From Geosiphon pyriformis uo1 (taxonomy: Eukaryota > Fungi > Glomeromycota), in contig JAAOMT010000283.1 of NCBI GenBank assembly GCA_016748015.1, forward strand, positions 190,108 through 254,107: 64,000 nucleotides of DNA. Reading direction: 5' to 3'. Below the pieces are notes generated by a model. It did not search any database, was not told where the DNA came from, and saw only the letters and a list, made by a program, of their open reading frames with translations. Made by a program: the position numbers and the translations under genes. How positions within the stretch are numbered: the stretch's first letter is position 1; each line of letters begins with the position of its first letter. Of this stretch, positions 52,905 through 54,275 are shown piece after piece.

Positions 52905-54275
52905 ATGTCTTCAACTTCATCAATTGAAAACCCAACTTCACCCCTTGACTGGCTTGAAGAATTATTGATTATCATCAAAGAAAATTTGGCCATTTTTCCA
53001 GCTAGTGAACATTCAGAAGTTGCTGACTTGGTGAAAAAATATATTGTGCGCAATCAGAAAACACCGGAAGACTTATTCAATTGCTTGAAAAACAAAAGTT
53101 CAAAGCGTTCAATACACCATATTTTGCTCGGCTTTTCATTAGAACATGGGATTGGAACTATTCCTAATTTAAGAAGAGCATTTTTAAGATTTCAGAAAGC
53201 AGCGAATGCAGAAGATCCTTTCGGACAATTCTTCTTAGGACGTTGCTATTATAATGGAGTTGGTACTTCACAAGATCTAGGAAAAGCATTTGAACTTTAT
53301 TCAGAAGCAGCAGAGGCGGGTGATACAAATGCACAAAACAATCTTGCACTTTGTTATCAAAATGGATTGGGAACGACGAAAAATGAGGAAAAAGCATTTG
53401 AACTCTATTCAAGAGCAACTATATCTTCACCCGTAGCCATTAAATCTATACTTGCAAATAAGCCCCCCACTCATGCTGGTCGAACATTTGACTCTTTGGA
53501 AGATCAATATGGACCATTACCGGCTTGGTAATTCTTCAAAATTTTCTTTCAAGATTTCAGTATAGGGTTTTCACATTCTGATACTCTTAATACAAGTCTC
53601 CTTCCTTTGCCTAGGAATAGAAATAGAATTCTCAGAATTCATAAATATTTTTGAATGAAAAATTCACAGGTGGGAACGTCGTGTTAACCATCTAGGAGAC
53701 ACATATTATGTGGATCATAGCACACGTACGACCACATGGACAAGGCCTTCTGCTCAAAGACCCCAAGAACAACAAAATATTACTGAATTAGAGCGTCAAC
53801 GACATAATAACAGGACTCTCCCTGAAGAACGTCCCCTCACTACAACCTCTACCTTACTAAATAGTCCTTCCTCATTATCCGTCAATGCCATTGAGCCTAC
53901 TTCAACAGGGACTCCCGCGATAAAAGGTGCAACAACCGCCGGCTATGAGTCATTGTCATTGGGTTGGGGTATGTCATTTATTTACTCTTCAAAGGTTACC
54001 AAGTTAATTTTTCATATAAAAAACGATTTGATAAATTTTTCCTAATTTTTAAACCTCACGATTTAGAACAGAGAAACACTTTTGAAGGCAGGCCCTATTT
54101 TGCGGATCACAATACTCGTTCAACGACATGGTTAGCTCCCCAACTTGGACCTTTACCATTTGGCTGGGAAAGGCGTCTAACAAGCACTGCCCGTGTCTAT
54201 TTTGTGGATCACAATACAAAAACTACTACTTTTGATGATCCACGGCTAGCAGAGGCGGGTAATACAAATGCATAA
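52905..54275 (+). CDS. Chimeric Sel1-repeat / triple-WW protein (3 exons, 376 aa)
   Basis: Exons 52905-53527, 53670-53968 and 54067-54275 splice in frame. Three Sel1 repeats are followed by [44 protein letters not shown] and [35 protein letters not shown] (Rsp5/Nedd4-type WW1-3). Confidence 0.8.

Follow-up and report, generated by a model that had tools for sequence, protein, structure and literature searches.

A captured RSP5 genomic fragment with three WW domains in a Sel1-repeat gene of Geosiphon pyriformis

Architecture of the chimeric locus

The window, the whole 64,000-nucleotide stretch of Geosiphon pyriformis DNA that was analyzed, carries on its plus strand a chimeric locus (52905-54275) with a three-exon open frame of 376 aa. 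An ATG at 52905 opens the host frame, and the host part of exon 1 (52905..53417, +) encodes the N-terminal region specific to the family, then two complete Sel1 units and the helix A that begins a third. This part is matched by Pfam Sel1 in two stretches (E = 1.5e-25) and shows 84-89% nucleotide identity to at least 239 candidate paralogs. The Sel1 sequence breaks off at 53417 after KAFELYSRA (helix A) and resumes at 54248 with AEAGNTNA (helix B), with no host bases lost or duplicated at the insertion site. Between the two halves lies an 830-bp captured RSP5 genomic fragment (53418..54247, +) comprising the end of the C2-WW1 linker, the domains WW1, WW2 and WW3, and two introns. The resumed helix B and a TAA stop at 54273-54275 complete the frame (54248..54275, +). 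The resumed half-unit, which extends over 58 nt (54248-54305), is 93% identical to 53309-53366, the matching part of the preceding unit. A first-pass annotation of this DNA had proposed that a Sel1 unit is split between KAFELYSRA and AEAGNTNA, and the junctions at 53417/53418 and 54247/54248 together with the near-identical half-unit bear this out.

Both introns are RSP5-derived, have GT..AG ends and interrupt WW domains. Intron 1 (53528..53669, +; 142 nt) splits WW1 (53517..53748, +) and is removed exactly in a contig of sequencing run X2. Intron 2 (53969..54066, +; 98 nt) splits WW2 (53953..54140, +); its splicing is predicted, and its removal is required for the deposited protein described below. 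WW3 (54153..54242, +) is uninterrupted. Once both introns are removed, the frame is open from 52905 to the TAA at 54273-54275, eight codons past the insert, where the preceding Sel1 unit has CAA. The 376-aa frame thus consists of the family N-terminus, 2.5 Sel1 units, WW1-WW3 and nine trailing residues.

The product of the chimera has already been deposited at NCBI as hypothetical protein G9A89_013097 [Geosiphon pyriformis], a 376-aa entry in which Pfam recognizes Sel1 and WW domains, and the gene model itself is therefore already public. G9A89_013097 equals the three-exon model exactly: each exon translation is found at its expected offset, and W and E result from the split codons. Its Pfam hits are to Sel1 and WW only, with three WW domains at 91.8 bits, and neither C2 nor HECT finds a Pfam match in it. 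The deposited protein thus agrees with the earlier claims that the frame is kept across both junctions and both introns and that a stop soon past the insert cuts off the old C-terminus. The claim of three WW domains in the insert likewise holds, all three being above the Pfam cut-off, as does the claim that it lacks C2 and HECT, since it corresponds to donor positions L004:4512-5461 only.

The left junction is unique to this protein. In a word search with 43 residues around it, G9A89_013097 was the sole match among 5.8 billion proteins, the search covering proteins of 0.55-1.75 times the query length. No ortholog of the chimera was found among these 5.8 billion proteins by the junction word search, and the chimera is a single locus in a single genome. 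We found no literature on the chimera.

The host gene and its family

The host gene belongs to a family of at least 239 candidate paralogs, with 75-89% identity among the 400 matches listed. Expansion of Sel1 and kinase genes in Glomeromycotina is documented (PMC9453076; bioRxiv 10.1101/2021.03.30.436303). Intact family members encode the N-terminus, 5 to >16 Sel1 units, a CxxC-rich linker and a TKL-type kinase (PK_Tyr_Ser-Thr, 95 bits), a domain present in the intact paralog L018. Homology between the host copy and its paralogs starts only ~60 nt before the ATG.

Compared with the 5 to >16 Sel1 units of its paralogs, the host copy has only 2.5, in an array of 227 bp that is followed by the insert and then by a 95-bp Sel1 remnant. 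Downstream of the chimeric stop lies a dead host tail (54276..54636, +), in which a Sel1 unit is degenerate, the frame shifts near 54385 and what remains of the CxxC linker occupies 54395-54636; stops are also present in the Sel1 frame past the insert. The linker remnant matches the linker of L018 in a different frame (tblastn). It is adjoined directly by a kinase-end remnant (54637..54790, +), which retains the last ~40 residues, out of frame, and matches L018 kinase residues 143-181. Linker end and kinase end are ~960 bp apart in the paralogs and 0 bp apart in the host copy, which indicates that ~0.96 kb of the kinase has been deleted at 54636/54637. The old C-terminus of the host was, or has since become, a wreck.

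The host copy is not the only damaged member of its family. Of 13 sampled paralogs, ten have a frame that stays open for 260 codons or more, which places the host copy in the broken minority; this minority is sizeable, since the other three (L014, L016 and L023) have a stop within their first 104-204 codons. An alignment of the host N-terminal part with 12 paralogs yielded ten private replacement changes and four private silent ones. This ratio lies within the paralog range and so does not discriminate, the N:S ratio being high among the paralogs as well. In one paralog of the family, at L028:1033-1452 (C607), a piece of ~420 bp of a Sel1 array is inverted inside its own array, and its minus strand is open for 139 aa. 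Rearrangements inside Sel1 arrays are thus not rare.

The donor and the mode of capture

A search of the fungus's own 128-Mb assembly found one other genomic place that matches the 830-bp insert, at C596:131511-132458, with 86% identity over 722 nt and 94% over 105 nt. This locus (L004) carries three WW domains and HECT exons, and an ORF upstream of the WW domains (4016-4207) is C2-like by eye, with no Pfam match. Judged by its domains, the donor locus is the RSP5 gene of the genome. The alignment of the insert to the donor is colinear through both introns, which occupy the same two positions in both copies, as a comparison of intron positions suggested by the first-pass annotation confirmed.

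The captured fragment corresponds to donor L004:4512-5461. It starts inside the donor exon that precedes WW1, in the linker after the C2-like ORF, and stops 14 nt short of the following donor intron, and neither end is thus an exon border; the donor HECT exons begin downstream of it. Microhomology with the donor amounts to only 1-2 bp at each junction. We found no terminal inverted repeats (TIR) and no target-site duplication (TSD), and no inverted or direct repeat is present at 53418 or 54247. The genome holds two copies of the fragment only, that of the donor and that of the chimera.

Because the introns are present and colinear with those of the donor, the fragment was copied from DNA, not from mRNA. 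The earlier proposal of a DNA-level rather than a retro capture is thus upheld, with introns retained and a donor now identified. Retro-capture is ruled out by the introns and by the lack of an intron-less copy in the genome, and transposon-mediated capture of the Pack-MULE or Helitron type by the absent TIR and TSD and the presence of only two copies. CpG or RIP-like decay of the insert was also considered and is not seen in the comparison with the donor; the CpGs had been described as retained, and 20 of 23 aligned donor CpGs are indeed shared, with three lost and three gained.

The origin of the chimera by capture of an RSP5 fragment is secure. Its pattern fits a free or copied DNA fragment captured in end-joining repair and not a transposon vehicle. 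A double-strand break probably occurred inside a Sel1 repeat of one member of the Sel1-repeat/TKL-kinase family and was repaired by end joining, capturing a genomic piece of ~0.95 kb copied from the single RSP5 gene. This piece landed by chance in sense orientation and in frame. Both captured introns would still act as introns, giving a spliced mRNA with a 376-aa open frame, and the WW cassette appears since to have drifted without purifying selection on its residues. If the frame is translated, a short Sel1 stub of helices would be followed by three weakened WW domains joined through flexible linkers, and the protein would have no catalytic or signaling domain.

Read support and transcription

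Two sequencing runs bear on the locus. Run X1 is DNA and may be the source data of the assembly. Its contigs tile 52986-54495 with no mismatch, and one of them (record 7) contains intron 2. The left junction is crossed by record 3 (53388-53639) with 30 host letters and the right junction by record 8 (54202-54495) with 46+248 letters. Over 53778-53906, X1 yields a pair of contigs with comparable depths (93.7 and 75.8): the sequence of one agrees fully with the window, and that of the other differs from it at six sites, all of them exactly in the donor state. Both copies thus physically exist, at about equal dosage.

Run X2 comes from the same sample and study and is labelled 'DNA?'. Its record 12 (236 nt, depth 18) joins 53388-53526 to 53669-53765 with no mismatch, skipping 142 nt with GT..AG ends, and so crosses the left host-insert junction with intron 1 removed as in G9A89_013097. 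We read X2 as RNA-derived because the genome contains no intron-less copy and because a second joint of the GT..AG type occurs in the same run. The X2 contigs, which show presence only, cover the left junction and intron 1, not intron 2, the right junction or the 3' end. The chimera has a transcript that spans at least the left junction and lacks intron 1, and its spliced RNA is partly verified. A check by RNA reads across junctions and introns, proposed earlier, is therefore answered positively for the left junction and intron 1; the first-pass annotation had called both introns spliceable, and the GT..AG ends are kept in both and splicing is seen for the first.

The second joint lies downstream of the chimeric frame. 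X2 record 13 (contig span 54381-54617) joins 54464 to 54548 with no mismatch, skipping 83 nt that read CT..AC on the plus strand, that is, a GT..AG intron on the minus strand (54465..54547, -). This joint shows that a spliced RNA runs antisense to the dead linker remnant of the host gene.

We consider it very improbable that an assembly artefact joined RSP5 reads to a Sel1 gene. The published Geosiphon genome (129 Mb, 795 scaffolds) is rich in repeats, at 64% (PMC9453076), which is the kind of setting in which an artefact could arise, and on the host side the contigs extend only 30 letters past the left junction. Against it, that junction is bridged in both runs (X1 record 3 and X2 record 12) and the right one by 46+248 letters in X1 record 8. 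The insert also differs from RSP5 at ~8-12% of sites and by eight indels, which marks it as a separate physical copy, and the insert and donor versions form separate contigs of similar depth. Misassembly is rejected on account of these separate X1 contigs together with the contigs that bridge both junctions.

Divergence of the WW cassette

Insert and donor were compared exon by exon on whole codons, with split codons skipped. The comparison gave Nd = 35.5 and Sd = 6.5, that is, a dN/dS of 1.86 (35 N : 7 S), and the changes at codon positions 1/2/3 number 10/21/11. When 42 mutations drawn from the observed spectrum were simulated on the donor, the neutral expectation was a mean of 11-12 synonymous changes, with P(S<=7) = 0.05-0.065. 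Purifying selection on the WW cassette is absent, and the excess of replacements is at most borderline and not significant. A dN/dS comparison with the genome's own RSP5 had been proposed as a check on the cassette; at about 1.9, it gives no sign of purifying selection.

The exons have diverged by 7.5% (44/590) and the introns by 12.2% (29/238), which is roughly what would be expected of a neutral copy compared with a donor that is constrained at replacement sites. Donor-to-window changes from GC to AT outnumber the reverse, 21 vs 10, and exon GC has fallen from 47.6% in the donor to 45.2% in the insert. Such a bias is expected for drift in a 29%-GC genome.

The WW domains are the conserved part of the Rsp5/NEDD4 ligase family, yet in the insert they have changed at the same rate as the linkers, with 13/90 residues changed in the domains (14%) and 16/107 in the aligned linkers (15%). 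In Pfam bits, WW1 has dropped from 37.9 in the donor to 29.8, WW2 from 38.1 to 28.7 and WW3 from 50.6 to 40.9, all three still above the cut-off of 26.9 bits. Conserved positions are altered in each domain. LPAGW has become LPAWW in WW1, which carries three more changes; in WW2, GPLPSGW has become ESLSLGW and FVDH has become FADH, so that LPxGW is altered in WW1 and WW2 and the Val of the Tyr pocket in WW2; in WW3, Phe takes the place of the second signature Trp (TTWDDP -> TTFDDP). Itch WW4 has a natural Tyr at this second-Trp position, and the replacement in WW3 is therefore no proof of inactivation. Most PPxY-contact residues (the aromatic of YY/YF, His and Thr) are kept in all three domains. 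With a dN/dS of 1.86 and altered motifs, the WW fold and binding residues give no sign of purifying selection.

The frame has fared differently from the residues. The three exonic indels (15, 21 and 72 bp) are all multiples of 3 and all lie in linkers, and of the five intronic indels (5, 1, 7, 2 and 1 bp) none is a multiple of 3. The 72-bp deletion takes out 24 residues of the 28-residue linker between WW2 and WW3 without touching either domain; because the WW2-WW3 linker of the donor aligns to that of Itch, the length difference is a deletion in the insert, in agreement with the earlier observation that this linker is shortened in frame. The 15- and 21-bp segments are not tandem duplications in the donor, and a 4-bp direct repeat borders the 15-bp segment; we read these two differences as probable deletions in the insert as well. 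From the donor layout, the chance that all three indels fall in linkers is ~0.1 by arithmetic. No stop has arisen, for which simulation gives P = 0.07-0.19 with 42 neutral substitutions and 0.14-0.30 with 30, and all four splice dinucleotides (4/4) are intact. Frame, linker placement and lack of stops combine to ~1e-3 under strict neutrality, a figure that is post hoc, the case having been chosen for its open frame.

An AlphaFold single-sequence model of the product (mean pLDDT 47.5) has helices and three small beta-sheets, in only loose agreement with the domain map. The first-pass annotation had passed over the destroyed kinase and C-terminus of the host, the further in-frame deletions of 15 and 21 bp and the changes at conserved WW positions.

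Comparison with known systems

The chimera shares with the Rsp5/NEDD4 HECT ligases three group-I-type WW domains, the inter-WW linkers and two intron positions, and its three domains (29.8, 28.7 and 40.9 bits) lie within the 2-4 WW domains typical of these ligases. It differs from them in having no C2 and no HECT domain, in a WW2-WW3 linker that is 24 residues shorter and in scores that are 8-10 bits lower for each WW domain. Since HECT and C2 are missing from its predicted domains, the chimera is not an Rsp5-family ligase. With the Glomeromycotina Sel1-repeat/TKL kinases it shares the N-terminal region, the Sel1 units, the CxxC linker remnant and the kinase-end remnant, and it differs from them in its 2.5 Sel1 units, the stop, the frameshift and the deleted catalytic domain. 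As it has no kinase, its predicted make-up is not that of a functional Sel1-kinase but of fragments of both families.

DNA-level capture of gene fragments is known from filler DNA at repaired breaks and from exon or domain shuffling. Like such chimeras, the present one has donor introns, ends that are not exon borders, minimal microhomology and an intact donor. It differs from Pack-MULE or Helitron transduplication in having no TIRs, no TSD and no element copies, and from retrogene chimeras such as jingwei in having introns. Capture and domain shuffling are known processes, and the locus appears to be a new and unusually well-resolved instance, none having apparently been described in this lineage. 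As an example of domain shuffling by DNA-level capture it is unusually clean and traceable: donor, recipient family, junctions and inherited introns can all be identified, and one inherited intron is seen splicing in the new gene. The fungus is an early-diverging symbiont, its genome abounds in expanded repeat-kinase genes, and the case illustrates that breaks in Sel1-kinase arrays can take up pieces of core genes and at once give spliced, translatable chimeras.

Plant NLR immune receptors carry integrated decoy domains. The chimera resembles them in that a domain from a conserved protein now sits inside one gene of a large family that is fast-evolving and repeat-receptor-like. It differs in that the signaling kinase is deleted, and an immune-receptor role of the Sel1 family has no support here.

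Possible function of the chimera

The evidence on function points two ways, the frame and the domain layout being preserved and the residues not. A preserved frame of this kind is unlikely under strict neutrality, and with its in-frame indels and lack of stops the cassette could have a function. A dN/dS above 1 combined with an open frame would also fit a young, adaptively evolving gene. We nevertheless conclude, with a probability of roughly 55%, that this real, expressed, lineage-specific chimera is most likely a dispensable and unconstrained relic or proto-gene rather than a maintained PY-motif binder, because its WW cassette appears to have drifted without purifying selection on residues. 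In reaching this conclusion, we gave somewhat more weight to the residue-level evidence and to the ruined host, as well as to the fact of a single locus and to ascertainment bias. Of the original proposal, the chimeric ORF and the capture stand, the ORF being annotated, transcribed and spliced. A ligase-less PY-motif binder that acts as an adaptor or decoy is not supported, given a dN/dS of ~1.9, equal change in WW domains and linkers and the loss of 8-10 bits. The version in which the chimera is an integrated-domain sensor is disfavored because the host kinase is lost, leaving no signaling in cis.

A functional young gene is the less probable alternative. Selection would here keep the Sel1-WW protein as a ligase-less PY-motif binder (an adaptor, dominant-negative regulator or decoy) with residues under positive selection. 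This would account for a transcript that is correctly spliced, for a frame that stays open through three exons despite 7.5% divergence and for three in-frame deletions that are confined to linkers and leave WW2 and WW3 whole. It is also consistent with three WW domains above the Pfam cut-off, with the borderline nonsynonymous excess (dN/dS 1.86, p ~0.05-0.065) and with a host family that evolves as a whole with high N/S. That excess, however, is not significant, and the WW residues are no better conserved than the linkers, with changes to LPxGW in two of the domains (WW1 and WW2), to the Tyr-pocket Val in WW2 and to the second Trp in WW3. The host is otherwise a wreck without its kinase, the junction word search found no ortholog of this single locus in a single genome, and the case was picked for its open frame, which introduces an ascertainment bias. 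A more specific version is slightly more doubtful still: the WW cassette would be kept open by selection while its residues change adaptively, and the product, specific to Geosiphon and lacking a ligase domain, would bind PY motifs and so titrate or redirect adaptors or substrates of Rsp5. If true, a fungus would here have its own equivalent of an integrated or decoy domain, observed after only a few per cent of divergence since its origin, while the donor can still be identified. A product that bound PY motifs would be a natural ligase-less competitor of Rsp5.

The open frame could also serve only to protect the mRNA, since a premature stop in exon 1 or 2 would trigger nonsense-mediated decay, but we regard this as improbable. 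The corollary, that selection acts on the N-terminal Sel1 stub or on the RNA while the WW residues form a free-riding tail, seems just as unlikely. An open frame with unconstrained residues, the position of the actual stop in the last exon and a private N:S of 10:4 in the host N-terminal part, like that of intact paralogs, would suit such an explanation. The explanation is, however, inferential throughout; a stub of 171 aa with just two Sel1 units has no known activity, and the in-frame 72-bp deletion lies in the last exon, where the model does not require the frame to be kept. As it stands, the chimera, read as a relic or proto-gene, illustrates the raw material from which new genes may arise, and it will most likely decay.

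Sequences flanking the chimera

Upstream of the chimera, a long open exon on the plus strand (49573-51423, +) resembles by eye the C-terminal half of a phage-type (mitochondrial) single-subunit RNA polymerase, and an (AAT)n microsatellite lies in very AT-rich DNA at 52120-52180 (GC ~18%). Non-LTR retrotransposon-like ORFs begin ~2 kb downstream of the chimera (56381-62452, +), and the chimeric locus thus adjoins repeats. One of these ORFs is ORF1-like, another of 487 aa resembles an endonuclease and a third of 833 aa resembles an RT/RNase H. In the DNA that separates the retrotransposon-like ORFs from the chimera, 55500-56250 is extremely AT-rich, with a GC content of 7-12% in 300-nt windows.
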